A stretch of 64,000 nucleotides of DNA, taken from Lepidodermella squamata (taxonomy: Eukaryota; Animalia; Gastrotricha). Below the pieces are notes generated by a model. It was not told the origin of the DNA. It saw only the letters and a program-made list of their open reading frames with translations, and ran no database searches. Position 1 is the stretch's first letter; each line of letters starts with the position of its first letter. The stretch is from assembly GCA_047495785.1 (NCBI GenBank), contig JBLDXI010000021.1, positions 1,488,001-1,552,000 on the forward strand, read 5' to 3'. Below, one piece after another: positions 28,396 to 54,060 of the stretch. Made by a program: the position numbers and the translations under genes.

Positions 28396-28823
28396 ATGCA
28401 TCCAAGCTCTCCCGCACTATCTTTTATGATTTTGCTGAGCTTTCTAGTGGAGCACGGTGAGCAATATTTGGCACCGAACGAAGCCTCAAAATCACCAGTG
28501 CAGACCGGTAACTTCATGAAGTGAGCGTATTGCCTAATTCAAATTTCAACGTAAATCGTTCCTATTAACTAATTAGTCAATGCCGACAACAATGTGGAGT
28601 GCCTGCGATGGTAAAGGGCCATGGAACTGCAGCGCTGCAAAGATACACACCGGCGGCTAATTTGCATCGCAAGCGGCAAATGCGATGCGTTAAAAGCTGC
28701 ATGTGCCACATGTACTGCACTTTGTTCGAAGGAGCAGGATTTACTAAATATGCATCTTGCCAATCGCAATGCATATTAGATCCAATAGATCAAACCATCG
28801 GGGTAGATAATGCCAATATATGA
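28396..28823 (+). CDS. Small 8-cysteine putative secreted protein A (123 aa; exons 28396-28520, 28577-28823)
   Basis: Hydrophobic N-terminus (ALSFMILLSFLV) and a 56-bp GT-AG intron that restores frame. Pattern C-x3-C-x30-C-x3-C-x-C-x3-C-x13-C-x3-C; paralogous to 53634-54060. Confidence 0.75.
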
Positions 28824-31359
28824 AAAGCCATGTTACAGTTTACTTACGTATCTATCAACTATCAATATATTTCGCTTTCATTTCGTTTTACATTTGGAAT
28901 TTGTAAAAGCTTTCTCTTTAGCTATGCCAAACAGAGGAACCGCAGGTAAAGCGTCAAATGAGCATGCCAAACATATCTTGAAGAACTGGAAAAGCTCCAA
29001 CATAGCGTCACCTTCAATGCCTGCTAATGAATTATGAATACGCATTAGAATAAAAAAAACTGAGATGTTTATATCCGACAGGATTTGCTATTGTTTCCTC
29101 TCAGCAGGATGTGCAAAGAACAGAAAATTACGCTTGAAATTTACAGGACATTGTTTCTTACAAACCTTTATAGTAAACAAGAAACCTGTAAGCTTTCTGC
29201 TCCATGATGGCCTTTTTATTTCTGACTCGGAATGTTTGATTGATTCAACGGCATCTGATCGCATTTCTAATTGAATATCGACATGACCAATCCATGTCGA
29301 TATTCCAATCCATGATTCTACACTGCGCGAAGATGTCAGGTCCCGTAAATCACCCGTGAATTCCGATAACTTTTTTTGTGGTGAATCTGTAGTGAAACTA
29401 GCCCCTCTACCTAACAAGTCTACTATTCGCGACGCTCAACGTAACAATTTTATCTAAAGCTAAATGTGCGAAACGTGGAAAGAGGCCGCGTCTTTTGCCC
29501 GTGATTCGCATTCAGTTTGCGAATAATTTACAACGGTTTTAACATTACTCGTACGTAAATGATGGGCGTATATTTTTACGACAGATTCACATACAAATGA
29601 TCATTTATTCGTTTTATGGTAGGATCGGACTTTTTCTGCGCAGTGTAGTACACTGCACCAGAGTTATCCATGTGACGTAGATAGAGTTATCCACTTGTTC
29701 AAAATTCAGGACCTAACAGGAAGCAGGATTTCTAAATCCGTAACATGCCCGGTCGCATTCCGAAATATGCTTTAAAATATTTGCCCAGATTTTATCGATT
29801 TACTTGCACAATGTTGCCTAAAAATGGCTCATCTCTCCGACCATTCGTTATTATTTTTGAGGCACAGATGAGGTGGCAGAATTGTAGCTCATTGCTCTTA
29901 GCTATCAACAGGCTATACCCCACCTTACCTAATACGGGTCTTGGGAATTCGACCGGAACCCGACTCGCTGACAACCCTCGTACAGTGAACGCAGGCAAGA
30001 TATCATAGAAGGTTTAAGACTGTGGCGTCCAATTCGCGAAACTTTCCCAAAGCTGGCCGAATCATTCAAGCATCCATCAGTTCGGATCAGCAACACTCGA
30101 ATGAATGAACGAAAAATAGTGGAGACATTGCGACATCGACGACTTGCAAATCGCTTTTTAAACGTAAAACACAGCCTAGATTAACTGTCACAATTCGCCA
30201 TGCTCTTATCAAATTTTCGGCTCTGCCATGCATGTATGGGAAAATGCTACGTGAAAAACTCTAATCTTTCGTTGTTGCGTTGTTACAGTGAGAGCTTCCT
30301 GAAAATTTGCAGGCATTTCGGGCATTTCGAAAATCCTAAACGTTGCTATTTTTGCGGACAATGTTGGCTAGGCATGGCCTATAGATCTAACACACCTTCC
30401 CATCTAAACTCAAGACTCTTGAGCTCGAAATTGCCGCAAAACTCCCGAGGAAAATCGCGGCCCGACGACTTAAAACATGCGGCTGAGATTTATGTTTCTT
30501 AAATATATAACAAATTTGTAATTATTTTATAGGCTTCATTTTGCTGTTATCAGGCAATTTACGATAATTTTAATATCGGTTACATAGAGATGGTGTTTTC
30601 ACTTTTTAAAAGTTTTTCTCGCGGGTTGTCGCTGTTTTGGTTGCGTCCCATCGTGTGACCCATCGGCCATCGGCTGCTTTTACCGAAAGGCCACCGGCAG
30701 GTAGTGATGGAAGATGAAAGACTTGGAACATTGGTCCTTAGATCGCTACTCGCTACACTGCGTGTCTCCAAATCGTTTACTTTCCAGATCACGCCTGACT
30801 GATGACAGATTATTTTGTTTGCCTTTTCCTGCGAGATGTTTAGCGGCAAGCGAGCCTTTCTGTGAACGGCAAGTTCTTTGACGTAGCCATAGTAAGCTCC
30901 GGAATTTTGGTGGAAGGCCTAATATTAAATTGTTAATCGACGCTCTTCTAGGAGCGTTGACCCTTAAAAATCACGTAGCACGTAGCACCTTCATCTGGTT
31001 ACGTTTTAGATCTTATGAAAGTTTGCTGTGCCCCATGAAGTAAAATGTAGTACTATTGCTCAAATAACTATGTTACATGCTATTTTTCTCCTAAAATTGG
31101 ACGAAGATGTTGGTATTTTAGGTTGAGATATCAAACTTCCCCCAAAACCATAGCCTGATGTTTAGTGTTTAGCATTGATTTGGTTTTATGCCACCTTCGG
31201 CATTCGGCAGAGTATCCGACCGCCAGAGAAAATAGCTAATCGGCATTCGGTCCTTCTACTGTGGAAAATTCATCCGCAGATCATGAATCTGCATATTTCT
31301 TATCGAGATTTTGCCATTAGGACATTCGCTGCTTTATTTTTTTGTGTGGGAGCTGTGAT

Positions 31360-32289
31360 ATGCTTCGACTTCCTTATAAGCTGCTTCGTTGTTTGCCATT
31401 GAATTCGAATGCAAGGCGGCAATACACTATCGTCTCCACCGCCAATCCCGTCATTTCTGGAATGATTAGTTCTCTTCATTCTGCACATGAAATGTTGGGT
31501 ACAAATTGGTGGATTCCTGTTGTTGCTTGCACTTTCGCGATGAAGTCCGTGTTGGTTTTTCCGTTAGCAATACATACGCAGAAGCTTTTGGAAAGGCGTC
31601 AGCGATTTCTGAAAGAGCTTCAAGATAAACTCGTTCACCTCAAGTGGAAAACAGCCATGGCCCACAAGGAATTTTCGTGGTCAAACAAAATGTCCAATGA
31701 TGTTTTTAACTTCAATAAGCAAGAACTTCGTAGATCTCTGGTGCTGAAGTATAATTGCCATTTTGCCAAGATACCAATTGGAAATTTATTTTCGGCTGCT
31801 CTCTGGTTGCATATGTCATTCTCGCTGCGCCACCTAACTGGTCGTGTTCCATTTATGGATGCGCCTTCGCCAGCTTTTGAGCCTACGTTGCAGTCTGGTG
31901 GCTGTTTATGGTTCGAAAATCTTCTTGCATCAGACCCTTATTTTGTTTTCCCCGTCATTCTTTTGGTCGCAAATATGGCTAATATTCAACTGTCATCAAT
32001 ACCGATTGGAAAAGCCATTCCGCAAAGTAAGATCACCAAATATCTTATGGTTGCCTCGCGTTGCGGCACAATATTAATGTTTGGTATTGCTTGTCAAACG
32101 CCGTCATTGATTACATTGTATTGGGCAACGTCGGCTGTTTTTGGGTTACTACAAAACCTTCTGTTCCGATCTTCCAGATTTTGCTCTATCGTCGGAATTC
32201 CTCATGGCTCTCAAATGAGTACTACCGAAAACGTTACCAAACAATCGCAGCCGGAAGAAAATAACTTGGGCCAAAAACATAAACTTTAA
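31360..32289 (+). CDS. COX18: Mitochondrial inner-membrane insertase COX18 (Oxa1/YidC family), intronless CDS
   Basis: Arg-rich presequence, YNCH, GGCLWFENL.ASDP and LYWATS motifs. Lacks the long Oxa1-type C-terminal tail. Confidence 0.88.
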   Translation: MLRLPYKLLRCLPLNSNARRQYTIVSTANPVISGMISSLHSAHEMLGTNWWIPVVACTFAMKSVLVFPLAIHTQKLLERRQRFLKELQDKLVHLKWKTAMAHKEFSWSNKMSNDVFNFNKQELRRSLVLKYNCHFAKIPIGNLFSAALWLHMSFSLRHLTGRVPFMDAPSPAFEPTLQSGGCLWFENLLASDPYFVFPVILLVANMANIQLSSIPIGKAIPQSKITKYLMVASRCGTILMFGIACQTPSLITLYWATSAVFGLLQNLLFRSSRFCSIVGIPHGSQMSTTENVTKQSQPEENNLGQKHKL

Positions 32290-32327
32290 TATTTTGCACG
32301 CTGATTTATTTTATTTTCGTTGTGTAG

Positions 32328-35300
32328 ATGGCCTTATTTAAAAAAATTGGTCACTTATTCGCGCCGGACAAAGCAAACAAGAAAAACTTATTCGGGTCTC
32401 TTGTGCAGCGGAATGTCAATCCTTATGACTTATGGAACGTAGAGAGTGAACTTGGCGATGGTTCGTTCGGGAAAGTCTTTCGTGCTGTAAATAAGGAAAC
32501 CGGAGTTAACGCCGCTTTGAAAGAAGTTCCCATTGAAAGTGATGAAGATTTGGAGGATCACATGGTCGAACTTAGCATTCTTCATGAGTGCAAGCACAAA
32601 AATATAGTGGCACTTTTTGAGGCATTCATGTACGATGACAAAATAATGGTAAGTTTGAATATTCTGCCAAATATTAATCTAATTTTAATATCCACATCTA
32701 GATGCTCCTGGAGTATTGCGGTGGCGGAGCTGTTGACAATATCATGATTGAGCTTGATAAACCGCTATCGGAACCGCAGATTCGTCATGTCTGCCATGAG
32801 TTATGCGAAGGCCTTGCGTTTTTACACAAACATAACGTCATCCACCGTGATATTAAAGCCGGCAATATTTTACTCACGTTAAATGGGATGGTCAAACTGG
32901 CCGATTTCGGCGTTTCTTCAAAGGATTCCAGAGCAGGAGTAAAACATACAACTTTCATAGGAACACCATACTGTAAGTCTGCTCTGTTATAACCACTGCA
33001 TGGCGTATTCATTTTTTATGTTATTTTCAGGGATGGCTCCTGAAGTAGCTATTTGTGATGCGGTGAAAGATGAACCTTATGATCACCGGGTGGATATTTG
33101 GTCTCTTGGCATAACGCTTATTGAACTAGCGCAGATGCAGCCTCCGCATCATGAAATGAGCCCTATGCGTGTAATCATGCGCATTCTAAAGTCAGATCCA
33201 CCGACATTGGAACGCCCTAATTTGTGGTCGTCTGAGTTCTCCGATTTCTTATCTCACTGTCTTGTTAAAAACCCGGAAGACCGCTGGCCAATAGCTGATT
33301 TGTTAAAACATCCATTCGTTAAAGACGCTTCAGATCATCAGCCGGTTCTGTTACTTCTGGCCGAATTTCGTGCCGATGTGTCGGAAACGCAAGAGGAAAT
33401 TACTGATCCAGAAGTTATCAAGAGATTTTCACATCAGGGCGAATCAGTCGAAACTGCCGACCCTTCGCCAAATGTTACGAGAATAGCTGAGCCCGAGCGT
33501 CAAATCAGCACGGAGTCAGCCGTATCAATTCGCATGGATAGCGCTTCGTCGGCTAATACCCCAGCGTCAATTTCCCCTCAAAAGCTAGAACCAGTCACTG
33601 AGAAAAAGTCGATTATATTTGTTGTCAATTCACCATCTCCAATCGACCCTTCAGAAGCTGATGACTCAATATTAGAACAAGTTATCATCGAAATGCTCAA
33701 TGAGGTCATTTTGGACGACGTTAACAGTCCCTCTGTTCCTGAATGTGTTGCGGCTAGCATATCAGAATACGTCTCGGAATTAAGTTCAAAAGCTGCTGCT
33801 AAAACACCAAATCCACCTCTTTCCAGCTCTTCATCTATTCAATCTGTCTCGAAATCAGCGCCTGAGCCGAAAACTCAAGCGAATGGCTTGAAAAAGAGAC
33901 AAGAGCCGGCAACGGCTAATTCAACACCGCAGCGTAGATTACCTCGCACGGCGTACAATCCTGTGCCCGAAGAGCCTGATCAAAATGTACAACCAGAGGG
34001 TACTGACTTGGAGACTAAGCGATCCCCGCTACAAAAACGGTTAAGCGTCGCAGAAATGGCGAAAATAATTCAGGTAAAATTGGGACATCAATCTGAAACT
34101 GATTCGGAGCCACCTCAACCTCAGCCGCAGCCAAAGGGCTTGCCTCGTCGGAATAGCCAAGTTATGGAACGGCCCCAACCATCGCCGGTGCCTCAACCGA
34201 TTTACTCTGATGCGATGGGGGGTTATCAGGATTATGGAGATAATTTACAGAAAAAACCACCGCCACCTCTACCACCTCGACATCATTCAGCATCTTCCGC
34301 TTTCCAGTCTGAAGATGTCAACTCGCCGTCTTCGTATTTGCCCGCCTCGGCAGCGGCGCAACAACAACAGCGCATCGTCAATGCGGAACCGTCGCTGTCT
34401 CCCATCCCCGTAGTAGCCGGGCCAAGGGTTTGTTTGCTCAGCTCTTCATTGTTTTGAATGCTCATTGTAAACACTTTTGTCAATAGGACGTCGTAATGCG
34501 GTCGCTAGACAATGCCGACGGCCGCGATACGATTGAGCGATCGGCATCTCGATACCGCACCCTCGTCCGGGTCAGGCGCTTCGAGTTTGCAGGCAAAACC
34601 GTAACAACCAGCACTAGTCATTTGATTGTCACAAACGAAGGCGGAAATTCGACCGTTGTTGATCGTAGCAAGGCGATGGCGCGCGAACGTCGCCGCCACC
34701 TGCGCGAACTCAAAGTCCTGCAACGTGCCGAGAACAAGGCCTATCAAGAGATGCTGACGAAGAGCAACCTCGAGTTAGACCAACACGCGAAGCGGATAGA
34801 AGCAGAGCGTGAAAACATTCTTGCTCGGTACGAAAACGAAGAAGAGCTATTACGCCAGCAACAAAAGCAAAATTTAGAGGCTGTTGAGCGGTCGCAGGCG
34901 CGTGAAATGAAAACTCTTGTAAAACGGCTCAATGAACAACAGGAACGGGAGTTCAAAGCTCTCCGCGAGACAGGCAAGGAAGAGCTGAAAGCGCTTGAGC
35001 GTGAAATTGGCCGGCTGCCGAAGGATTTGCGCAAACAAACTCTTCGCATTAAAACCACGATGAAACAAGACGAATTAGCGCGTCGAGAGGCGGATTTTGC
35101 GCGACGCCAGGAGGAGAAAATGCAACTTGAAAAACGCACTCTGGCTGAATCGCATCGTGGCGACCTGCTACGGTTGGAGCAGCAATTCCTCGAGCAACAA
35201 CAACACATTCGGCGAAAGCAAGAGGCTGAAGTGGCGCAGTTAGAGGAACGGCAGGTACATGAAAAGCACGCGTTGTCTCAGCGGCACATTTTGACGGCGT

Positions 35301-36324
35301 ACAAATTGAAACAACAACAAATGTCGACGCGGCATTTGCGTGAATTGGCTCGATTGCGCGCCGAGGCTGATCACACCGTGGCAGAACTAAAGCAGAGTCA
35401 TAATGCAGAGATGAAACTGATTCCGCGCAAAATTCGTGAGGAGTCGAAAGTTCGGCTCCAGATGTACAAGGAAAAACTGAGAATCGAAAGTAAAAAGAGC
35501 GGTATCAGTGATATGCGGCTCGGTTTTATGAATCTTGTGGGCGATGGTAATCGCGAGAAAATACGTGAGGTTTGTTGTTTATTGTTTTAGCTCTCGTTCC
35601 ATAAATCACGCATTATTTACCTTGATCTGCGTAGTTTGAAATGGAAGAAAAGCGGCGCAAGGAGGAGTATCAAGATCGAGTTGAACGTAGACACAAAATC
35701 GCCCTTGCCAAACTCGAGGCTGAGAACGAAGCGCTGATAAAGGAGACCGAGGCCGCTCATTGCGAGGCCTTGCGTCAACTCGCGGATGCCGAGGCTACCA
35801 AACTGAACGAACTTGATCGCGAGTTTCAGGAGGAATTACTCCGATGCCATAACGCCCATCTTAACGCCCAGGCAGAACTCGAAAATCGTTTTAGAGAAGA
35901 ACTTGAAGATCAGCGACGGTTTTATCACGTCCCTGTTTGTTTACGCCTACTTTGATTTTCTTATTTATTTCTACTGATTGGATTTTTTCAGCTTCACTCC
36001 ACAACTTCGTCTCCGAACTCAGCTGGTGCTGTCGGAGTATCAGTTCGATCTTCCAAATCTTCGTACGGAGTTGGCTATTCCAACGACGATTCGCTGTCGA
36101 CTGGAACGGCCTCTAGCTCTGAAAACCACCAACGAATGTACCAAAGTCAGCACAACACGTCTAATTTTAGCGGTCTTCCGCGCTCGACTATGGCAGTCTC
36201 GGACTACGAGCTGGCTCTCGCAGCTCGCGGTGGACGCGAAACCAATAATGCGATGTCGGCTTCGACAATAGTTATGCAACAAACCCAAAAGTCACAAGCC
36301 ATCTACACATCAGAAATGTTGTAG
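32328..36324 (+). CDS. SLK: STE20-family kinase STK10/SLK (Slik) with C-terminal coiled-coil (PKK) region
   Basis: ELGDGSFGKV, HRDIKAGN, DFG and GTPY|WMAPE; RTLVRVRRFE motif; long coiled coil. Five short introns; last exon 35992-36324. Confidence 0.93.
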
Positions 36325-37525
36325 TCCAAGCTCAATTTTTTGTATCCTTAGCCCAGATTAACGATGGTGCCTTATCTATTTTTTGTAAAATTCATCAACT
36401 TTCACTCTTAGGCTGCAAAAGTGGTTGTTTCTTTTCGAATCATAAGAGCTGCTCAACGCTTCGACCAATGCCCTTCTAGAAATTATTGTTCGATTCGGCT
36501 CTTGCCTGCTCGATGTCAACTGATTTCCAAAACAAAAATTGTGATCACTTCGGAAACTTATCTTCTGTTTTTGATTAGTGCGTCTTTTTGCTCACTTCCG
36601 TTGTTGTGAAAGGACCTGTGCTATGCTAAACAAACATTGCACTGACCATTGATTGATTTATTGCTGGCTCCTGTTAGAGCCCCATCTTCTTTTGTTCATC
36701 GCGGATATTTTTATCGACCAAAGCCTAGCCAATTTTCTTCAGTTTTTTCTGGCCGAACGAACGGGTCATTTACGCGTCTATTGATTACCGATAGACCCGT
36801 CGTCGCAGTATTAACAACCCTACGTGTTGCCTGCATCAGTTTACATTCCTTCGCGTGTTAATTGCCGGAATGCGACACGCCGCTCGTTAACCGCGTGTTT
36901 GTTCGGCAAATAGCGTTAACGCGATTTAATGTAGCTCAAATGTGTATGGACTTGATGTCGTAATTCCCGTTGGTAGAAGATTTAATTTTTTTACTTGCAA
37001 AATCAATCGTTTTCAAAAGAACTTTCACTAGCTGTCACGTTTTTATTTCGAGAATTTGTTTCTATGCGTGTACATGTACAGAATTCCAAAGATATGCAAG
37101 TGGCACTTATTCCCGTTCTTTTTCCCTTCCTTCTTCAGAAGAAACTGCTCCCTCGCATTTGGTTGTCACTTTTTGAGTTTGCTCTGGTGGCTGCTTTGTT
37201 TCATTTTTCTTCCTATCCTATAGTTGTGAAAAATATTGTGAGTTTTGTATAATGAAGATGATAAAAAAAAGCTATTCTCACATTTATATTGCTATTATAA
37301 TAAGTTGAATTGAAATAGAGTTAATTTATACATCAAAAATAATATGATATGGTTGTAAAATGTAAGTGCGATTATTCCCGCTAATTTCATCAATATTTCG
37401 TAATGTATAATATTTATGACGTTGGCATTTCAAAAATGCAAAGAAAATTTGTGCATGAGTTGATAATTTTGGGTTTTTGTGATTTTTTAGATATTTTACA
37501 TTATTTTCTATGCAATCGTGTTCAA

Positions 37526-39465
37526 ATGATGATCATAAAGCGTGCATGGCGGGCCGTGTTCGAATACGTTTTATCGGAGTTACTTTACTCGTCCGTACCG
37601 CCGGCTCAACCATCAGTTCACATTTCACCTCCCAGCTTTCTACAGCAGCAACAGCAACAACAACCTCGATCGCCTCCTCCAGCGGGATCGTTCGCGCCGC
37701 CTCCACCTGATCCTCAATTACTGACTCACTTTCAACAGCGAGAAAGGGTCTATGCTTTCATCCAAGTTCCATTGTCCCTGGAAAAATTTATGCTTTTCGC
37801 CTACTGGCTATGTGCTGACACCTTCCTTACCATGTTCACTTTCCTACCGATCAGGCTTATGTTCTGTGCTTTCAACTTCTTATCACGTCCGTTCGGCTAT
37901 TTTTTCAACTGGAAACGGTAGGTAGACATAAATTTGATAAGATTTTGAATAATTTTCCACGATTTTTATTCATAGAAAACTCACTCCAGCTCAGAGGTGC
38001 GATTTTCTCCGTGGTGTCGTTATTTTGTTCTGCTCAGCCATTGTCGGTCAACTCGATGTCAGTGTCTTTTATCATTTGGTTCGAAGTCAATCAATCATCA
38101 AGCTTTACATTTTCTACAATATGCTCGAGATCGCCGAGAAACTGATGGCCTCCGTCGGTCAAGACATTATGGACGCTTTATTCATCACTGCAACTGAACA
38201 AACATTGTAAGTATGAGTGATTTATAGAATTCGATTTACCATTGAAATATTTTTACGTTTATAGCCAAAAATCGCGATCTCGTTATCTGGTACTAGTATT
38301 CCACGTAGTGCTGGCGATTATTTACTCTTGCATCCATACCGTGATTTTTTTGCTCCAAGCCGTCACGCTAAATGTCGCATTCAACTCGCAAAACAAATCA
38401 CTGCTGACCGTTATGATGTCGAACAACTTCATTGAAATCAAGTCGAACGTGTTTCGGAAATATTCGAAAAACAACTTGTACCAAGTCGCGTGTGCCGATG
38501 CTCGCGAGCGGTTCCATCTCGTTGTCATGATGGGCATAGTCGCGGCTCGAAACATGGCCCAGTACCACTGGTCTATCGATCATTTAATGGCTCTCCTGCC
38601 AGACATGGCTATCGTGTTGACAGCCGAAGTGTTTGTCGATTGGATTAAGCACTGCTTCATCAGCAAGTTCAACGAAACGTCGGCCGATGTGTACACCGAC
38701 TTGCGTACAAGCCTCGCGCGTCACGTTCTCACAGCCTCGGTCGCCTCTGGAGGTGCTGATAGACAAGATACAGTCGCGAACCGCACCGGGCTCAGTCTCG
38801 TCCCTCTTACGTGTCTAATTATTGTCGTAGGGAAGCAAGTACTCAAATCTGCTGACTGGAGCGGGCCCGACCCACTCTATCTTGCCCTGTTTATTTTAGG
38901 CGTATTTGTGCTCAAAAGTATACTCGGCTACTTTGTCATTTCATCCGCGCGTTCCATCGTCGTTCAGGCGTCGCAGTTGGCTGTCGTTAATCTTACGCAC
39001 TCGCATGCGACCGGTCGCATGGCCGGCGGGCGGAGTTATTCTGTCGAAGATGTTAAATTCGAAACGTCGAAACCAACTTCGAACGTCAGCACCCCGGGTT
39101 CGTTATCGCCTAAACTCGCGCATGTCAACACTGCGCTGAGGCAGATGGCTAAAGAAAATGAATGGCCTCTACCGGCTAAAACACCCGTCAGCCCGACCGT
39201 CATGGCGGTTAAGCAGTCGTGGGCGCTCGAGTTACGCCGGGCGCGGTCTATTGGTGACCTAACCTCTACGGGGTTATCTACAATTTATGAAACTGCGTCT
39301 ATCGCCGCGAGTGAAGCTGCTAGTAAGAAGGACGAACAACAAAAGCAGCAACAGCATGTGCATCGAAAAGTTACATCTTCATTTACACCTCGCATCCTTG
39401 TAGGTGGTGGCAACAGTAGTAGTGCTGGTGATTATGCCTCGGTGAAGTTCTCTAAATACGAATGA
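37526..39465 (+). CDS. TAPT1: Transmembrane anterior posterior transformation 1 (DUF747); start uncertain
   Basis: RERVY..VPLSLEKF, SIIKLYIFYNMLE, TLNVAFNS, MMSNNFIEIKSNVF, DARERF and DWIKHCFISKFN motifs. Confidence 0.9.
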
Positions 39466-39677
39466 TGATTTACTACCCGGGAAAATTCGGCTTGCTTCAA
39501 CCCTTATCAACAATATCGTATTTTATTACAACATGATTATAAAACAGTGGAACGCTAATCGCTTTTTGGAAATTCGGTTGTTTGAGTGAAATGTTTTTTA
39601 TTTTCGGATTGTTCTCTTGGCTACTAAAGCAATTGTACCTGAACTTTCCGTGTTATATATTTTAGTGGCTTGCTTAA

Positions 39678-42941: not shown

Positions 42942-43543
42942 ATGCTAAAGCACCATCATGAACATCACGATGCGCCGATTCCAGGCGGTTCGCCTGACAA
43001 TCATCGCCGCGGTGTGCAGTTCGTAGAGGACCCGAAGCACAGCGACCCTCTTGCGGCTCATGACTCGCATAAAATTCATATTGTACAGCACGGACCGGGC
43101 GAAATTCTCGCAGATCTCGGCTATTTGCAGGAGGGCTGCGAATATTCGGTTGAGCTTGATCTGACCCAGAGCTTGGCCGCGCTCGAACTGGCGCGTGTTT
43201 TCGCTTCTGGTATGCATCAGTCCATTGAAGCTAGTTGCCCCACTGTTCGTCTCATCGCCTTCGACCCCAATTCGTGTGTAATGACGATCCACCTCACTGC
43301 TGACGTTCCGAAAAAATGGACCCGGCGCCTTGTCGTCAAAACTACGGACGAAAGCAGCACATTGGCTTTGAAGCTTATTGCAAATGTTCTACGTAAGATA
43401 CCTTGATAACGTTTTTCGTGGTTGTGAATTTAGTTTTGCGTGTTTTAGCTATCGGCTTTGGCACTCCGCTTTTGCACGACGGTGTTCACGTTCTTGGCCA
43501 TGGCCATTCCTCCCTTGAGGACGATAGCGGGGAAATGCGATAG
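42942..43543 (+). CDS. ADISSP: C20orf27/ADISSP (UPF0687) homolog; exons 42942-43392, 43449-43543
   Basis: VQF...HDS, LGYLQ...Y and the spliced C-terminus ANVL-PIGFGTPLLHDGVHVLG match the family GTP.L.DGV motif. Confidence 0.78.
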
Positions 43544-44283
43544 TCACTACAACTGAGAACTAATCGTCATTCCTATCAACGAGCTTTGCGAGTCGCTGAA
43601 ATTTTCGTAGCAATTGCTTTTGTAGTTTTTGTGATAGGATTTTTGTTCCATAATTCTATGTCAAAAGTGTATTGAACATAATAATCTTATTAACTGCAGA
43701 ACACCTTGTATCGTGGGTTGTATTAACTCCATTCTCTTGTTGTGCGAGGCATGTCGATGCCCGAGACCGGTCTAATACTTCCGATGCGTAAGTATCCAAT
43801 GCCTTTAGAAATTCCGAGCTATATTAATCATCATCGATCTTGCGAGAGTATCAACCGTTATTACTAACTGTGAAAAAAACGATCAACCAATTCGCTTCTC
43901 TTCCGCCAATTTTTACGTTCTGTGGCACTGTGGTAATGCTTTGTGATGTGTGCGATTTGAATTTTTGTAACAAAAATCAATGGAATAATGTACACGATTG
44001 AAAGCACAGACACAACAGTGCAATGCTGATGTCATTTGAATGCACCTTGCGAATGACTTTTTTATTTGCCATTATTTTTAGAGCGTAATTATTACCAATC
44101 AAGGTTAAGATGAGATGTGACAACTTGTAATAAAACTGCGGTTTCGACGCGAGCAATTTTTTGAAAGGACGAAGCTGAAAAAACGTGAGCTAGTGTGCAG
44201 CCCAATCATTTCTCCTGATTAACATAACTGCCTATCCCGCATTGAAATAATCAGATGTCGAATTTTAGGTTTTAGTTTTTCGC

Positions 44284-45162
44284 ATGAATTCCTGTAATGA
44301 CGATTCGCTCGAGATCTTAGAAAGTGTATTGGGCGCGAATGGGAAGTCGAATGCTGTTGTATGCGTTCAGTCCAAGCTTAGAAATGCGAATGCAGCACAC
44401 AAAACTGTAGTATTCTTCCCTGGCGATGCACAAAATTTAGCCGCGGCAATGTCTGCTCACCGCGATAACTGTCGATACATCGCATGGAGCTTCGAAAACG
44501 TCGGTCGGCTCCTGCTTGAGAAATTTCAGAAGAGCGACCCGGCGTCATTTTGGCGAGTGGTTCTCATTCAACCCAAGGAAAGGCGCTTAGGGACCTTCGC
44601 AGTTTATTCGAATTTCCTGGAGTTCGACGCGCAAGACAATCCGAAATTCCCCGAAGAACACCTGGAAGGTCCTGCGGCCTGGAATCACCTAAATGCATTG
44701 CTCAAAAGTCTTGATTCTCATTACAAAATCGACTTACCTGCTGAGGTGATTCTTCTCGGCTTCAGCAAAGGCTGTGTTGTTGTGAATGAGCTGGTCCGCG
44801 AGGCTTCACATTGCGATGATCTCAACTCATTGGATGCTTTCAACAATTTAACTGCTATTTATTGGTTGGATGGTGGACATAATGGCGGCAAAAATACATG
44901 GCTAGCTTCAAGCAACGACGTTTTACCGTTTTTACGAAAATCTCTTGGGCGAGTTCGTTTTCACGTTCACGTTACACCTTATCAAGTTAAAGACCCAAAC
45001 CGGCCTTGGAACGGTAAAGAATGCCGCCGGTTTGTTCAAACTGTCGAGAAGTTTTTGAAGGAAGAAAATCACGTTTCCTATCTTAAATTCAGTACTCATT
45101 TTGTCGAAGAACCTGGTTCGTTGATCAATCATTTTAGAGTGCTAGAAGCTTTTGAGGTTTAG
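44284..45162 (+). CDS. C2orf69: C2orf69 (UPF0565) mitochondrial protein homolog, intronless CDS
   Basis: FFPGDAQN, GFSKGCVVVN, YWLDGGH and HVTPYQV.D..RPW.GKE motifs. Confidence 0.9.
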   Translation: MNSCNDDSLEILESVLGANGKSNAVVCVQSKLRNANAAHKTVVFFPGDAQNLAAAMSAHRDNCRYIAWSFENVGRLLLEKFQKSDPASFWRVVLIQPKERRLGTFAVYSNFLEFDAQDNPKFPEEHLEGPAAWNHLNALLKSLDSHYKIDLPAEVILLGFSKGCVVVNELVREASHCDDLNSLDAFNNLTAIYWLDGGHNGGKNTWLASSNDVLPFLRKSLGRVRFHVHVTPYQVKDPNRPWNGKECRRFVQTVEKFLKEENHVSYLKFSTHFVEEPGSLINHFRVLEAFEV

Positions 45163-46676
45163 TGTTTTATTTGCTGATAAATCGCTGCATTTACTCCTTA
45201 TCTTTCCCGTTTATTTTGCTTTATAGAATTATATATTTTTGTAATATTATATTCCGAAACCGGTCTATTGTTAATTGGAGCTGCGCTATTGCAATACGCA
45301 TGGAATATTAATTGCCACCTCACCTGAAAGGTATGTCATTTTTTCGGTCCTTCCGGCGCGTGTTTTTACTCGTGTACTTTTTACATTCATCATCATCGTC
45401 GTAATGTTATGTTTGTCTTGCGCTGAGAACGTAGGCCAGTATTTTTTCTCTTATCTAGCCCTCGTATGTGAAATATCAAACACTTTACGATCCATTGTTT
45501 CAGTTTTCAGATAACGCGGCGCTGTTTTCATTTCTCAGCAATGCAAATTCGTAGTTGCTAGCTATACACCCGGCAGATGCGTTGTTTAACGCGTTAATTT
45601 TCGATAATTAGTATACCGTTTTCAGGTCATCGGAACCGCGCTGCTAGAGAGTCTCTCGAAGCGTTGTATATGTGTGTATTGCCACGCGACTGGAACTTGT
45701 ACGGTCATGTGGTATAGTAAACATGCATAAATAAAATACCGTGCCTGCTCGACAGCTCTGCCCTCATCGACTGCGATTAGCCGTTTGTTATATCAATGTC
45801 ATCGCGACACTCATGACGTACTCTGGTCCAAAGTAATAAACCATTGCGTACCTGCAGTGACGGTTTTTTTGAAATCTTCGTTTTTTTGCTGAGTGTTGCT
45901 GCTCCCGCGTTTTGTTTACGAGCGCATAGCTTTTACCTGTGGCGCGCGTGCGTGAGTAATAGATTTGGTTGGTGGCAGGTATAAATATAATAATAATACC
46001 AGACCACGTTGTTGTTTGCCTTTGATGAGCGAAGATAGCCGGTAGCCTGTGCAATGTGCATGCATGCATGTGTGTTATTTTTGAGCTCTCCCAAAAGGTG
46101 GGTGAAAAATTTGCATTTCAAATAGTACAAACCTGATATTATACACTTTTATTACAATAGCTGTCTGGCTATTATAATGCCATTAATACCATACGTTTGG
46201 TTTTTTTTCTCTATTGCAACCTACCACCATTCATCATATTTGATTGGCCAGAAAAATATAATTACGAAGTTCGTGATGAGCGGCAGTTTTGCTCTCATAA
46301 TCATCAATTATAATCGCATTATCATCTTACATGCGTGTTTTCCTGTTTGTAAGAAAATGTATTCATACGCATATTGCGTGCTCAGAAGGGTTTTTCTCTA
46401 CTGAATACGGCTTAGTCCGGTTGGCTGGTAGTTTAGGTCAACCGGTTTACCGTGTTGTTTATGATGAGCGAGCGGGCATCTATTTTTGTGACTGTGTGAG
46501 AAAACACGGCCTGAAGCGCATCTCACTAGTGTTTATCATATAACCGAGTGACACTAAGGCTGTTAACGTTGTCAAAATTTGACTTTCAAATTCCACATGT
46601 TTACCTCTCGTATAGACCGGAAGATCGACCGTTTATGCGGTTTTAAACACCACATTTACTTTTATTTTGCTAGATT

Positions 46677-49600
46677 ATGATGGCTTCAAGTTACGGCGAT
46701 CATTTTCAAACCGGCGGGACTTATGGCGTTAATTTTGTGCCACCGAGTGATTTTCGGCCCAAGCAAGTGCCACCGATCGCTAATGCTAACCCATCCCCGC
46801 CTCGTTGGTTAAAGTACCAGGTCTACTCAGACCCCTCCGTTTTCGCAACAATCGACGAGCATGCGGTCAATGTAGCTCGTACAAACTACGACACGTTCAA
46901 CGCGTTCATTTACAATTTGGTTTATTCGAAAAATTTTACACCGCTCGAAAGATTGCGATTGATTTATCGATGGCTTACTGCGAGAAATCTTCAAACCATC
47001 AATTTTAACCAGGCTCAGGCCCTTCAACCCGGCTCGCCTGAAGACGTCGTCGTCGGATTTCGACACCGACGTTCGACTTACAGCAAAATTTTTGAGACAC
47101 TCTGCCTAGCTGCCGGAATTCCGTGTGCGCTGATCACTGGCGTTGCGAAGGGTATTGAATACCGCCCGGGTTTTAAGGTGGCTCAGTACCGAACCGGGGC
47201 GCCTATCGAAAAAGAGCAGCAGTATAACCACTCGTGGAATGCGGTTTACATCGACAATTCTTGGCAGCTGGTCGACGTGCAGTGGGGAACTCGATTTTTG
47301 CAGACTTCGGCCGATGCTCATTCGGCGAGTCGAAGCAGTGATGAAAATTTGATTTACGAATACGACGATTTTTATTTTATGCCCGACCCTAGCCATTTGA
47401 TATATTCACACTACCCAGACGACGACCGGTGGCAACTAATGCCTAATCCCGTCGCTTTTGACGTGTTTCAAAGCCTGCCCTTAGCTAAGAGTCACTTTTT
47501 CCTGGCCGAACTTCAGTTTTGGTCGCATAATACCGGTGTTGTGCAAGCGAGAAATGGCGCTATAAAGCTGAGTATTGGCTATTGGAAACCTGTCGGGTTT
47601 ACCTACAAAATGTGGGACAGCGATACGCTATCTCAAGAAACGCCAAACCGCATACCGCTTCATCGATTCGTTCTGCAAGAAATGGGCGATGGAATCGTTA
47701 ATTACTATATTAAGCTGCCTTATGCCGGGTCGTTCTATTTCAGCATTTTTGTCCAACGTCTCGATGAAATGGAAGTTGGCAAACCGGCTGTTTATAACGC
47801 GGCGTGTGAGTACAAAATTATTGGAGATCGAGCCGCGACTTCAGCCTCGGGAGGTCCCATTGTCCCATATCCGGATGTTGATTCAACCTATGGCTATGGC
47901 TCTTCACTCTATTACTACCAGTATGGCCTGGTACCTTCATTCAAAGCCGGTGTTGTCCAAGCATCGGTGATGACGAATGATTTCGACCTTACGTTTGCGA
48001 AAACGAAACAGCCGCGAATTTATTTCCGACTTCGGCCGATCGAAGACAGTTCGGGTAACGTCGAGCTGCCTATTGACATTCGCGATACAAGCCAACTGGC
48101 GAAAGTTGTCGGCCGGCTGCCGAACCCTGGCGAGTTCGTTCTAGAGGTTTACGCTAACGATCCGGTGACTGACGGCAATCAATACACGCATATCGGCCAG
48201 TATTTGATTGTTGGCGGTGGGGTGGATCTGCCTGAATTCCGCCCTGGTCCGCCTCAATCGTCTCCGGCTGGTTTCGCCCGTTATCCGGATACTTATGAAC
48301 TTCAATCGAACAAGCCGTATTCAAAACTAGTCTACCAACCGTCAGCTGCTGCGAATTCGTTACCGCCGCGGGATAAACCGAAGTCTCAACAGGTAATTCA
48401 ACTCATTTTTTTTACCGGAATTTTGTCGTAAAACTGTGAGTTTGGCGCATATAATTATGTTAAAAGGAGGTTTTTCCGACGAAACAGCGCGAAAATGTTG
48501 CGGTTACGAACCTGCCGTTGATTATACGGGGTACAGCAAGCATATGCATTATAACCGGGCCCAAAGAAGTTTGTTGTCACGTGTAATGTCCCGCGCTCTT
48601 TTTAGCTGTATCATCGCTTTTATACACGTATATTCTCATCATCGTATACCAGTATCGCATTCTTTCGCGCATGACAGACAGAGTTTCTTACGTTTTTTGC
48701 ATGGCTATATTCTTACTACGTGAAAACATGAAAACTAGGAAGTACTTATATGATATGGCTGCGAAAGGTGTTTCTATCATAAATATGTCTCGGGCTCAGC
48801 TGGCTTTCCTCTCATAGATTATTCCAGCAGATGTATATGTTTATTTGCTTTCTCCTCACCTTTGTGGTTCCTAAGATTGAGCTCATCTTTGTTTCTTGTT
48901 TTTATAGAGTGTCGGCCCTGTTGCTTTCTCCGCATCGCCAATGAACACTAGCGGGAATAGATCAACCGTCACTGTCCACGCGACTCCTTTCACTCCGAGT
49001 TCTGCGACTGGAGCGAAACCATCTGCCGATACAGCTAAGCCCCACGGCGATATAATGGTTGAATTACCCGCGCCTCCACCTGATTGGGCTGATGACAGCG
49101 ATCTTGGCCCTGTTGTCGCTAAAGTCGTGTCTTCATCGCCGTTCCGGTCTCAGCCGGGCAATCGACCAGTTACCCAGTCACCACCAACTGCGCCGAAACC
49201 CTTCCGACCAGCACCGGGTAGCGGCCAATCATCGCCGAGCCTTGCTCGAAAACAAGCAACTGAGCCATCTGGGAAAACTCAACAGTTGTTCCCACCGACT
49301 ACTGTTAACATCACGTTCGATGAACCGAAAGCCAGTTCGGTTTCGGCGGGTCAGCAGCAAAGCGCGCCATCTCCGGCTATTAAACACGGCGGCGTCCCAA
49401 TCGGGTCCCCGGCTCCGTTCTACCAGCAGAAGAGGGACCAATCGCCTGTTCCCAAAGACAAGCAACTAGGCGTTACAGTCACGTTTGTCCCGGAAAAGGC
49501 CAAAGACGCGTCCCCGCCTCGTAACGATTCGGCGAAACCGGAACCAGCTGGTAATAACCAACAAGAAAAGCCGTCACCGCCACGTTACGAATCAGATGCA

Positions 49601-52600
49601 AGCGTGTCGTCTGGCTACAAACCGTTGGCTGATGTGATTCAGCAGTCATTTGCGTTTAACAAGCAAGAAGCTTCGCCGCCTCGTCAAGACCAAACAGTCA
49701 CGTTCAAGCAACCTTCACCGCCTCGCCAACAGCAAGAACCGGCGAGTTATTCGACAAAGCAACCATCTCCGCCTCGTCAGCAGCAAGAGCCGGCGAATTA
49801 TTCGACGAAGCAACCGTCGCCGCCGAGGGGCGAAGAGGTCGAAATCGCATCAGGCTCTTCCCTAAAGAAAAAGCAAAGCTTTGTCTATCGAACCGATAAA
49901 TTCGCGATTACTTCGAACTATCAACGCCCGGCGAATGCCCCGGCTCCCACTGCTCCAGCTCAGTTTCAAGTCGCTAGAACTAAGGCGGAAGCTGCGCCGC
50001 CCGTTGCCCCGGTCGCTGCTGGATCGGGCCAGGGCCCGGCTCATTTGATTAACGAGGAGCTTGAACAGTACGAAGAACATCAACGCGTTTTCTCCAACGT
50101 CGATCGACACGCGTTTGAAGTCGCCCGAGCACAGCATTCAACATTCAGAGACCTGGTTTGGGATTTGATTTATTCCCATAACATCAGCGGTAATATTTAC
50201 GAATTATTAAGGAAGACTATTTTAATTTTCTATTATAATTCCTAGACGATTTGGAAAAAGCTCGCGCTCTATTTTTGTGGCTGTGCACTAAAGATCTGTC
50301 GACAATGCAGTTCATTAACGTTACCCCTGGAAGCCCGGAGGATGCGCTGATGGGTTTGAAGTCTGGCTCACAAACCTACGCCTCGGTTTTCGAAATGCTA
50401 TGCTCGTTTGCTGGTCTCCACTGTGTTACAATCAGCGGTTTTGCCAAGGGCGTCGATTACCAGCCTGGCATGAAATTCGAAGGTAAAGAAGCTCTCCACT
50501 CGTGGAACGGTGTGCTGGTCGACGGCCAGTGGCGCCTGGTTGACACCCATTGGGCCGCCCGGCGTATGGTCGGACGTCGCTCTATCGACAATCTGCGTTA
50601 CGAACTCGATGAATTTTTCTTCTTGACCTCGCCTCGCCAGCTGATTTACACCCATTTCCCCCACGACCCGTCGTGGCAACTTCTCGAAAGCCGGGTAACA
50701 CTGGCTGAATTCGAGAATCTACCGCCTGTTAAATCGCTGTTCTTCAAACTCGGGCTGAAATTTGTCGACGACGCTGGCCAAGCTGTTTTGCCCGCCCCGT
50801 ACGGCGAACGTAAAGTTCAACTTCAATTCAACAAGGCCGATGCGGCTTCAATTGATTTCAACTACGCGTTGACGATGGATAACGGCTCCGATGAAGCCAG
50901 CGTGCCAGGCGACAAATCTGCGGTGAAATTGAATCGATTTGTTTTCCATGAGATTGCGCCTCACAATGTCGCGTCATTCCTACTCCGCTTGCCTAATGCC
51001 GGTAATTACCGCTTCGTTGTTTTTGCGACTCCGAAAACGACGGAAACTCAGTCGGCGTCGGCGGTCGACAAATCGGACAGGGCTTACTCAGCAGTTTGCG
51101 AGTGGAAAATCAACGCTGGCCGGCCTGCGACGAATTCGGCACCGTTTCCGTCGTGTTCCGCGCAACGTTGGGGGCCGCCTCTAGCCGCGTTGTCCCAAAG
51201 CCGCGGCGTGACTGATTTGCCAATCGACGCCAGGATTCATACGGATTCGAATGGAATCGCCGAAATCGTCCTGCGGAAAACGAACGCAAATCCATCGATA
51301 ATCTTCGCTGGGAAATTGCGGGCTTTCCGCGGTTTTGAGGAGGCTGTCCTCGACACGGCTGTTCTTCACCGGCTGGTCGGTTCTGACAAGGCGGTTTTCA
51401 CGATTTCCGCCCCGGGCCGAGGCGAGTTTGGTATCGACATCTTCACCACGCGGCCCGATGATGAGCCAACAGGCGGTAAAGGTGCGCAAAGCGGCCAGCG
51501 GACTTTGTTCCATTTGTGCCAGTACTTGGTGATTTGCGAGGAGCCGACCGTTTCCGGCATTCGCTTCCCGGCATTACCAGCCGGTTATCTCGGTGCTCAG
51601 CGGTCGTTTGCCGAACTCGGGCTCAGTGTCATCAGCCATCCCGACCCGTTTGTTCGGGTGAAAAACGACAGCGCCCCGCTCGAAGTGATTTTCGGAATCA
51701 CACCGGGTCGCCCAGTTAGAGCGGTATCGAGCTTGATTCGTCTGTCGGCCCCTACCCCCGGTAGCCCTACTGAAGATCTATCCGACTGGGTGCTCCATCA
51801 ATCACCACTCTCGGGTGACAGAATCGCCTTGTAAGTCAAGCAAAATTTCAACTTGAAAAGTTTTTTCGAAAAATTTATTGGCACTCATCATTGAGAGTTC
51901 CGGGTACGGCGACAAAGCAGCAACTTCGCAGAACAGCGAATGCGACAAAACGGCAAATTTTTTATTTTGCGACAAAACAGCGAAAACTTAGTATGTAAAA
52001 GATGCGTCGTGTTTCTGCTGTTATGTCGCAATTTGAAAAAGTTGCTGTTTTGGGCATTTGCTGTTATGACGGTCTGCTGTGGGAGTGCTACGTCCCACTT
52101 CTTAAATTCAAAAATACTTTATATTTGTTTATACTTTATTTCGATTTCCGTGTTATCGAAATTGCTTAATTGCGTGACCTTGTTATGTTTTTTCAGTGTG
52201 TGCCGATTCCCGAAGTCTGGGACGTATAAGCTACAGATCTTTGCCCAATCTGCCGACGCCGTAGCGCAGGCGGACTCTATTCCTGGTGTCTACAATTATC
52301 TCATCGATGTCGCTAAGGGTCCGGTTAAACTCGCGAATGAAGAATTGTTGCCGTTCCCGAAGCAGTACTCGCAGTGGCACGAGGGCGGGTTCCTAATCGA
52401 ACCACTCGACGGCTTAATCAGTCAAGACCGCATGCCGGGTGGGAATGCGAACCGGCTGCTCGTCAGAATCGCCATACCCCGGGCGAGAAAAGTAGCCGCT
52501 GTTGTCGGCGATACGTGGACGCATCTCGTTGCCGGCACCGACGGCATTTGGGAGGGCGTGGTTGTTCTCGACAAGGTGTGGTCGAATCCGAACCCGAACG

Positions 52601-52686
52601 CGAAACGGCTCGCTGTATCCGCCAATTTCCTGATCGATTCGCCTAATGCATATGCTACTCTATTAGAATACAAGCTCGGCGCTTGA
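46677..52686 (+). CDS. Hillarin/kyphoscoliosis-peptidase-like protein with two transglutaminase-like modules, about 1690 aa; exons 46677-48392, 48908-50189, 50246-51830, 52197-52686
   Basis: Two copies of LC..AG..C..I.G.AKG..Y.PG / HSWN.V / LVD..W / F..P..LIY.H.P, each followed by Ig-like beta segments, separated by a Pro/Ser/Gln linker. All splice phases are compatible. Confidence 0.85.
49706..49828 (+). repeat. 51-bp coding tandem repeat (KQPSPPRQQQEPA[S/N]YST, about 2.4 copies)
   Basis: Units start at 49706, 49757 and 49808 and differ mainly at synonymous positions. Confidence 0.85.
51909..52080. mobile_element. Degenerate inverted-repeat (MITE-like) element in the last intron of the KY-like gene
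   Basis: Repeated GCGACAAAACAGC-like units on the left are mirrored by GCTGTT(A/T)TG units on the right, giving roughly 70-bp imperfect arms. The host intron is 366 bp. Confidence 0.55.
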
Positions 52687-53633
52687 ACTTTACTATGAAT
52701 TTTTTATTCAGATAGACCACACACTGCCGCAATCATTGTTAACCCGTGTTTATTCGATGTTTTTAGCATCTCTCTTACCCAGAAATCGTTTTAATTTTGC
52801 ATTTTCTTCCATTCCAGAGACTGCTTATTCTTTCTATGAGAAAAACCACATTTCATTGGTGTCTTTGCGCTTCTCCTTTGCTTGGTATCGCAATGTTTTT
52901 TAACCTCGATTGGAAAGAGTGAGAGCAATTTTATTGTGCCAGTTGCATCTTTCAGATGATCAACCTTAACAGCTCGTTTTTTTCCGAAGAGAATTATGTA
53001 TGCATGATTTTGTCTTTATAATTTCCTATCGTCATTGCAAACTAAAAATTATTAACTGATTTTATCGGTGTTTTTATTTCGTTTGTAGTTTTGTGAGTGC
53101 CGAATAGTATGGAAAGAATAAGTGAATAATTCTAGAATATTTCGCTACTAATTTTTTAGCGTTGTTTTCACTGAACCTCCCTTTGATCGATTGATGCTGC
53201 TGGAAAATTTTGTTGTAAAGAAAATAAATTATCTCAGCCTGGTTTTTTGGAAATTGAAAGTGCGCGTTGTTCTGCCATATTTTACCCGTAAATGTGCTAT
53301 TTAGAGTTATATTATCTGCTTTTTCGCCGTCGCACTTTTTGCGAGATGATAACTAAAATAATATTATGTAAATTTGCGAAATTTCATCCTTGTTGAAAAA
53401 TATTTTGTGCAAATCGTGTCAGTTTTCGAAGGATGGAATAAGAAGTAAAAATTTTATTTGTTTCTGCCCAACGTTTCTACTATGGAAATGAACGATTCAC
53501 GTTACAATAAGGAAAGGATCGCTCCTTTTGGACAACCTCAGATTTTGCGAGTTTTCTAAAAGCACTGAGATGGGCTAGGTGCTATAATGAAAATTGACGA
53601 TAATGACTCTTAGCGGTACAATACCGAGACACG

Positions 53634-54060
53634 TTATTTAGCATCGCTTGGCTCCTCCTCGCCGAAGAAGACCTTCCAGTCTTGGGGCTGACTTGAAAAC
53701 GGCTTTCTAGTCATGCACTCGAGGTTGCATTCGATGCTATCGATGGGCATGCCAGCCTCTTCCAGGGTGCTGCAGTAGGTTGTGCAGATGCACGAATCAG
53801 CGCAGTTGGCCTGCTTCTGGCGACGGCTTTGGATGACGGGGTGCCGAGACGACGCACCGGCGGCCCAAACCGCGGATGAAGTCGGCATTTCACACTTCAC
53901 TCGGCACTGCCTAAAATCACACGCATTCGTAATAATTATTTCTTGGTAATTTAGTAAGGTCTTACTCGAATGGATTCAGTTCCATGTCCTCAGAGTCCTG
54001 AGCGTTGACAGCAATCGCCACGGCAGCGGCAAGAGCAAGAAATAAAATTCCGCGAGACAT
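53634..54060 (-). CDS. Small 8-cysteine secreted protein B (123 aa; exons 54060-53966, 53910-53634)
   Basis: Clear signal peptide MSRGILFLALAAAVAIAVNA and a 55-bp GTAAG...TTTTAG intron. Pattern C-x3-C-x29-C-x3-C-x-C-x3-C-x14-C-x3-C. Confidence 0.85.

Follow-up and report, generated by a model that had tools for sequence, protein, structure and literature searches.

A gastrotrich family of putatively secreted eight-cysteine proteins with a predicted disulfide-clamped helical fold

We have analysed a stretch of 64,000 nucleotides from the gastrotrich Lepidodermella squamata (assembly GCA_047495785.1, contig JBLDXI010000021.1, positions 1,488,001 to 1,552,000; hereafter the window, numbered from its own first letter), which carries two small genes, gene A on the forward and gene B on the reverse strand, each encoding a protein with eight cysteines. 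Comparison of their sequences indicates that A and B are true paralogues, similar above chance, and that they are the two members of one subfamily. The whole family counts at least 13 genes in the L. squamata genome and has orthologues in at least two further species. According to structure models, the mature protein is most likely built of three helices clamped by eight fixed cysteines. This is apparently a new arrangement of a known stapling principle, and the family matches no described family tested. Overall, we consider the structural and genetic description of an old, lineage-restricted family with mature proteins of about 70–115 residues to be probable on balance. With low confidence, we further suggest that the members may be single-chain extracellular ligands or binding proteins, with their specificity in the loop between Cys2 and Cys3.

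Two paralogues and their wider family

Both loci have been read directly and spliced by script. Each yields a coding sequence of 372 nt and a protein of 123 residues with eight cysteines, interrupted by one phase-2 intron (Table 1), which reproduces in all details the gene models of a first-pass annotation made from the letters of the window. The cysteines follow the layout C-x3-C, x30, C-x3-C-x-C-x3-C, x13-14, C-x3-C in gene A, and the same layout with x29 at the first gap in gene B. The x30/x29 spacing, the common elements QCR, SC.C..YC and E.AG, and the basic clusters HRKRQ (A) and SRRQKQ (B), all of which that annotation had listed, are present as described.

The two proteins align in BLASTP with E = 1e-10 and 34% identity over 58 residues. 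When the cysteine positions are fixed and the rest is shuffled, the local score of 98 compares with 40 ± 8, and none of 2000 shuffles reaches it. With X in place of each cysteine, A and B still score 35, where shuffles give 19.9 ± 3.3 and 2 of 2000 reach the real value. Thus the similarity stays significant with the cysteines masked, and the homology of A and B does not come from the cysteines alone. Each intron interrupts a codon that lies two residues ahead of Cys1. A maximum-likelihood tree joins A to the clade of B with support 86/87, on a branch of 3.3 changes per site.

The annotation had taken A and B for dispersed paralogues that define an unassigned family of secreted eight-cysteine proteins. 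The paralogy and the unassigned, putatively secreted character stand, but the family is not defined by two genes. In a six-frame search of the whole assembly (121.2 Mb, 151 contigs), exon 2 of gene B finds itself with E = 2.6e-59 together with additional weak matches, and a profile built from ten exon-2 peptides (alignment A1) recovers 13 loci with E from 8e-24 to 2e-3. Apart from A and B in the window, these are tandem groups of three on contig C25, two on C26 and three on C15, and singletons on C13, C23 and at C21:379k. Twelve of the 13 members have the phase-2 intron at a shared position, one codon ahead of Cys1, and in most cases it is 52–59 nt long. The remaining one, C15:113k, has its intron between Cys6 and Cys7, and C15:119k has introns at both places. 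A hydrophobic, signal-like N-terminus is found in every member with a complete model (12 of 12); exon 1 of the C23 member was not found in gene modelling.

Among the members in this genome, the eight cysteines and one proline after Cys8 are invariant, and the consensus reads xC-x3-C...CMNxCICxAYCxxF(E/D)...C-x3-C-xx(K/R)P(Y/F)....FF. The unit CX3C-Xn-CX3C thus appears twice per domain, with Cys1-2 paired to Cys3-4 and Cys5-6 to Cys7-8; both C26 genes have CX4C instead of CX3C at Cys1-2. The linker between Cys2 and Cys3 varies from 13 to 54 residues. The net charge of the mature domain ranges from -7 to +5 and is mostly acidic or neutral, and the isoelectric point lies at 4.2–6.8 for 18 of the 28 tabulated mature sequences, two of which are incomplete. 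Every complete mature domain has an even number of cysteines (8, 10 or 12, and 6 in P0012/P0020, which are relatives from other assemblies).

Relatives outside this genome are few. When the profile was run exhaustively with HMMER against 1.84 billion representative proteins, it returned only 12 matches at E <= 1e-3. All of them lack an annotated name and lie on metagenome contigs from ENA, Logan or JGI assemblies. The contigs are animal and also carry genes for major vault protein, a LIM-homeodomain protein, Cys-loop receptors, histones and the like. A hydrophobic N-terminal signal segment is present in 11 of the 12 relatives, and P0007 is a fragment. A word-indexed protein search gave no match with gene B alone and, with a 21-sequence profile, four proteins that were all already found; the pattern CMNxC[MIL]Cx[ASG]Y, scanned against JGI metagenomes, picked out 33 stretches without a relative among them. 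In the paper on the Lepidodermella squamata genome (PMC11660948) the words "cysteine", "secreted" and "intron" do not appear, which indicates that the family is not described there.

In the tree, several paralogues pair with an orthologue from another species, namely B with P0006, C25:1705k with P0001, C15:118k with P0003, and the C23 member with P0004. The three tandem genes at C25:1704159-1707250 also have three counterparts, in unchanged order, at L027:7956-10611. Since the tree groups the paralogues with their cross-species orthologues, they should be old and individually retained.

For gene B, the comparison extends to the gene structure. Its relatives P0006, P0010 and P0012 retain the loop motif MP.S..W and the acidic tail KPF..P..W..FFGE.E, and in all three, which are intronless, NPFE-x-C is continuous. 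P0013 and P0019 are likewise uninterrupted open reading frames with a continuous ..NPFE-x-C.., so those species lack the phase-2 intron. As the intronless orthologues match the gene B sequence only once its 55-nt intron is removed, comparison across species gives the splice junction an independent confirmation. The identity of gene B is 60% to P0013 and 60% to P0006. Between B and P0013 the non-synonymous rate (dN) is 0.35 and the synonymous rate (dS) is saturated, hence no dN/dS ratio is given; these rates are compatible with purifying selection. In each relative the B-like genes form an adjacent pair, head-to-head in L024 and in tandem in L025, while A and B are 25 kb apart here, and the B-like loci of the relatives show no synteny with the window. 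Of the sampled words of the 701-nt region around gene B, the DNA run X1 holds a share of 0.91, run X2 (2014) 0.72 and run X3 (2015) 0.64; the shares in X2 and X3 are about as expected from spliced mRNA. As a separate observation, the phase-2 intron that the window has at 53911-53965 is absent at L024:10001-10393 and L025:10001-10363; among B-like orthologues, a young clade has thus either gained or lost an intron.

For gene A, exon 2 is transcribed according to an RNA-like contig of run X3. The contig is 339 nt long, matches the window with 0 mismatches at 28580-28918, begins 3 nt after the predicted acceptor and covers all the rest of exon 2 and about 95 nt past the stop. This extent supports both transcription and an exon boundary near 28577, and it also fits X3 being RNA. 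The share of gene A words in X3 is 0.54 at a word depth of 13, and exon 2 and the untranslated region (UTR) explain all of it. In runs X2 and X4 no contigs have been placed on gene A. The case for exon 1 consists only of its open frame, the shared position and phase of the intron, a hydrophobic segment within the family range (maximum over 10 residues 2.60, against 2.2–3.8 in other members), and ..NF.., a weak counterpart of the (D/N)PF motif which precedes Cys1 in the family.

Two further observations concern the surroundings of gene A. An acceptor-like ..cattag lies at 28387-28398, directly before the ATG, and may serve for trans-splicing or as acceptor of a further upstream exon. Directly after the stop, at 28804-28943, the DNA run X1 contains two haplotypes that differ by 11 substitutions and two 1-nt indels in 138 nt, and the 634 nt upstream of this stretch, with the whole of gene A, are identical in X1.

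Predicted fold and comparison with known families

AlphaFold2 (AF2) models were computed for exon 2 of gene B from alignment A1 (10 sequences) and for exon 2 of gene A from alignment A4 (22 sequences). Their mean predicted local distance difference test (pLDDT) values and the predicted template modelling score (pTM) are given in Table 1. The gene B model has helices at residues 2-5, 12-19, 24-51, 58-68 and 75-82, and the gene A model at 2-5, 25-53 and 58-66, with pLDDT of 91-96 in its core and a disordered tail. In both models Cys1 and Cys2 lie on a short first helix, Cys3 to Cys6 on a long central helix, and Cys7 and Cys8 on a third one. The models therefore place all cysteines on helices, in agreement with the earlier suggestion that four CxxxC motifs form a disulfide-stapled helical bundle, though this is a prediction.

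We propose the following course of events. The protein would be directed to the secretory pathway by a signal peptide at its N-terminus, encoded in most members by a separate exon. In the endoplasmic reticulum the mature domain would then fold around one long central helix, Cys3-x3-Cys4-x-Cys5-x3-Cys6, with Cys3 and Cys4 on one face and Cys5 and Cys6 on another, about 120 degrees apart. The short N-terminal helix (Cys1-x3-Cys2) would be pinned to the first face, and the C-terminal helix (Cys7-x3-Cys8) to the second. The outcome would be two twin-CX3C helical hairpins with a common central helix and the predicted bonds C1-C4, C2-C3, C5-C8 and C6-C7. A conserved proline and an aromatic amphipathic tail come after Cys8. 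As the Cys2-Cys3 loop is so variable in length, it would be the obvious site for properties specific to each paralogue.

Two observations bear on the bond map. Residues i, i+4, i+6 and i+10 of an alpha-helix point to about 0°, 40°, 240° and 280°, so that Cys3/Cys4 and Cys5/Cys6 should form two separate faces, each of which fits one CX3C partner helix. In addition, one natural variant, P0012/P0020 (L024:8607-9062, reverse strand), has His in place of Cys6 and Phe in place of Cys7, with its remaining six cysteines intact. Such a joint loss would be expected if Cys6 and Cys7 were bonded to each other as the inner pair of the second hairpin.

The annotation had not recognised the cysteine framework, and searches of Pfam, PDB, Foldseek, VIA-align and the ESM Atlas have likewise found no match. 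Pfam hmmscan of A, B and ten other members at E <= 10 gave noise only (PAN_3 at 0.61; CTD1 at 0.009 in one member), with no match to saposin-like, ShKT or other helical cysteine-rich domains. A profile sequence search of PDB gave 0 matches, and Foldseek against PDB with both models gave best E values of 4.4 and 8.6, without a credible relative. In the wide VIA-align search the best Z was 5.2, where values below about 13 are uninformative for helical proteins. In the ESM Atlas, template modelling scores reached at most 0.57, to unrelated bacterial proteins, and the feature score of 0.76 was below noise level. These empty searches put the family outside every described family that could be compared.

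The nearest analogue in principle is the twin-CX3C hairpin of plant alpha-hairpinins and of the scorpion and cone-snail Cs-alpha/alpha toxins, with bonds C1-C4 and C2-C3 (PMC7191063). Those peptides (kappa-hefutoxin, OmTx, conotoxins flf14/vil14) are secreted and have CX3C-Xn-CX3C on two antiparallel helices. The motif recurs in both halves of the present domain, where the absence of Cys6 together with Cys7 in P0012/P0020 agrees with a bond of the "inner pair" type. However, they are single hairpins of 22-50 residues and usually basic, whereas the present family would have two hairpins on one CX3CXCX3C helix, with 70-115 residues, a loop of up to 54 residues and a mostly acidic character. Neither sequence nor structural relatedness to them (e.g., the vicilin N-terminal region or kappa-KTx) has been found.

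Other cysteine-rich helical proteins are more distant in design. The small Tims (Tim8/9/10/13, zf-Tim10_DDP) share twin CX3C motifs and form a disulfide-stapled helix-loop-helix of the kind predicted here, but they reside in the mitochondrial intermembrane space, lack a signal peptide and have four cysteines, unlike the present proteins with their putative signal peptides and eight cysteines; Pfam PF02953 did not match A, B or the ten other members. The plant eight-cysteine motif (8CM) of non-specific lipid transfer proteins (nsLTP) and 2S albumins, C-Xn-C-Xn-CC-Xn-CXC-Xn-C-Xn-C, shares eight cysteines and a central CXC, and has four disulfides and an all-helical secreted fold as predicted here, but the family has no adjacent CC, a different spacing and no Pfam match. 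Aplysia attractin and the Euplotes Er/En pheromones are small, mostly acidic secreted helical proteins of aquatic organisms with 3-4 disulfides, much as predicted here. Their cysteine frameworks are different and homology is not detectable, so a functional analogy would be speculative.

Possible function and processing

We tentatively favour the reading that the members would work extracellularly as soluble ligands or binding proteins, single-chain and resistant to proteases, with a distinct and conserved role for each paralogue. Secretion and the single-chain state are both inferred. Cationic antimicrobials and two-chain hormones are less likely than this. A fast-turnover defence or toxin family, as well as a cross-linked matrix, is disfavoured by the old conserved paralogues, the charge, the even cysteine number, the absence of repeats and low complexity, and the conserved tail and loop of gene B.

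According to the first alternative, the stapled hairpins would act in host defence or as toxins against microbial membranes or ion channels, as alpha-hairpinins and scorpion kappa-toxins do. The same CX3C..CX3C helical-hairpin principle (PMC7191063), the multigene family in tandem arrays and the variable loop would all suit such proteins. However, acidic or neutral mature domains prevail, the proteins exceed known hairpin toxins 2-4 times in length, and the Pfam and PDB searches have found no sequence match to toxin or antimicrobial peptide families. Moreover, old paralogues which each have cross-species orthologues do not look like birth-and-death turnover, and hence we consider this alternative unlikely.

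Structural or matrix components, such as those of cuticle scales, egg shell or adhesive secretion, also appear to us a doubtful assignment. Such materials typically contain small stable secreted cysteine-rich proteins from multigene clusters; in addition, we are probably dealing with a scaled gastrotrich, and the paralogues are conserved. But the even number of cysteines in every complete mature domain means that there is no spare cysteine for cross-linking, low-complexity or repeat regions are absent, and in X3 gene A reaches a word depth of just 13.

The annotation had also proposed that cleavage at the basic site could give a two-chain, disulfide-linked mature peptide. As a prohormone or pheromone precursor, the protein would be cut by a convertase at RR/KR before Cys3, and the chains with Cys1-2 and Cys3-8, held together by disulfides, would act on a receptor. 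A basic cluster does lie 4-9 residues before Cys3 within the A/B subfamily (besides A and B, RRRQRQ in P0006, RRRERQ in P0012 and KLRR in P0010), the predicted C1-C4 and C2-C3 bonds would hold both chains, and the tail and loop of gene B are conserved across species, as would be expected for a ligand. On the other hand, LRDRQGQC, the corresponding stretch in the second of the two tandem B-like genes of L025, is not dibasic. The other 11 members in the genome have no consistent basic site, and most members lack one in the loop altogether; the linkers of these 11 are unrelated and some are only 13 residues long. There is also no second site to free a connecting peptide. In the gene B model, R29-R30-Q31-K32, 4-7 residues ahead of Cys3, lies inside helix 24-51, where 10-residue blocks have mean pLDDT of 88-94, and a cluster within a confidently predicted central helix should be a poor convertase substrate. 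A conserved basic face of this predicted helix would explain the cluster better than a convertase site. Insulin and relaxin differ as well: they have a B-chain, C-peptide and A-chain, flanking dibasic sites and the A-chain pattern CC-x3-C-x8-C, whereas the family lacks the CC pair and has its basic cluster in the A/B subfamily only and on one side of the loop only. Overall, the proposed two-chain processing is probably wrong, and we rate this alternative as improbable. Equally hard to uphold is the combined view that an undescribed disulfide-rich fold, with two twin-CX3C hairpins fused by one CX3CXCX3C helix, serves gastrotrich-specific extracellular signalling ligands, with A and B cut into a two-chain hormone or water-borne pheromone.

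Finally, that A and B are chance open reading frames or dead gene copies is very improbable: gene A does have a very long branch, no C-terminal tail motif and an atypical putative signal peptide, but the frames of both genes are open, the eight cysteines, the invariant proline and the conserved intron are kept, profile E-values are about 1e-18, exon 2 of gene A lies in an RNA-like contig, and gene B has 60%-identical orthologues.

Several points weigh against the single-chain ligand or binding reading and the model beneath it. The fold is only predicted, from alignments that are shallow (10 and 22 sequences), and the disulfide map derives from helix geometry, the analogy with alpha-hairpinins and the one natural joint loss of two cysteines. 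The role as ligand or binding protein is deduced from the evolutionary pattern and the charge only. For gene A, the putative signal peptide has no basic n-region and has Glu at -3. Run X3 is only guessed to be RNA, its contigs cannot show the joint of exon 1 and exon 2, and none of them falls on the gene A intron, exon 1 or flanks.

Gastrotrichs are a barely studied phylum, and the expression sites of 13 old paralogues could help to define their secretory or neuronal cell types. In addition, the family would mark gastrotrich contigs in freshwater metagenomes, and a compact scaffold of about 70 residues with four predicted disulfides and a long variable loop could interest protein engineers. 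Nevertheless, the significance is modest, as orphan secreted cysteine-rich families are common in invertebrate genomes.

Feature coordinates and genomic context

Table 1 The features of genes A and B and selected neighbouring genes, in window coordinates.
Feature	Position	Strand	Description
Gene A exon 1	28396..28520	+	ATG, hydrophobic signal-like segment, stretch before Cys1 to ..GNFM(N); 125 nt
Gene A intron	28521..28576	+	56 nt, GTGAGC..TTAG, phase 2; position and phase as in 11 other family members
Gene A exon 2	28577..28823	+	Complete eight-cysteine domain and stop; profile E = 1.4e-18; AF2 pLDDT 78.8
Gene A 3' UTR	28824..28918	+	Putative, from the end of the RNA-like X3 contig
Gene B exon 1	53966..54060	-	Classical putative signal peptide (..AIAVNA|QD), acidic stretch to ..LNPF(E); 95 nt
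Gene B intron	53911..53965	-	55 nt, GTAAGA..TTTTAG, phase 2; removal restores the motif that is intronless in orthologues
Gene B exon 2	53634..53910	-	Eight-cysteine domain, conserved tail KPF..QPQDWK.FFGEEE, stop; AF2 pLDDT 83.1, pTM 0.70
Angiotensin-converting enzyme (ACE; Peptidase_M2)	78-959	+	One of two genes in opposite orientation
Angiotensin-converting enzyme (ACE; Peptidase_M2)	6276-7805	-	The other of the two
KY-like (kyphoscoliosis peptidase-like) genes	46677-52686	+	Two or three tandem transglutaminase-fold genes, Ig-like_KY domain
Brr2/SNRNP200 helicase	57574-63057	-	One uninterrupted open reading frame, 1827 aa

Besides genes A and B, the window, with a GC content of about 44%, contains genes for ACE, the Rab geranylgeranyltransferase beta subunit, Brr2, an SLK-like kinase and MIEAP, and also encodes a cytosolic carboxypeptidase, KY-like transglutaminases and a Cox18-like protein; an Rfam scan of the window gave nothing. 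The Rab geranylgeranyltransferase is 58-60% identical to its best named matches (molluscs, annelids, arthropods) and 75% to a metagenome protein, so no close relative is annotated. The spliced-leader pattern of rotifers does not occur in the genome, which speaks against a rotifer as the source. The uninterrupted Brr2/SNRNP200 frame shows that the genome is compact and intron-poor.

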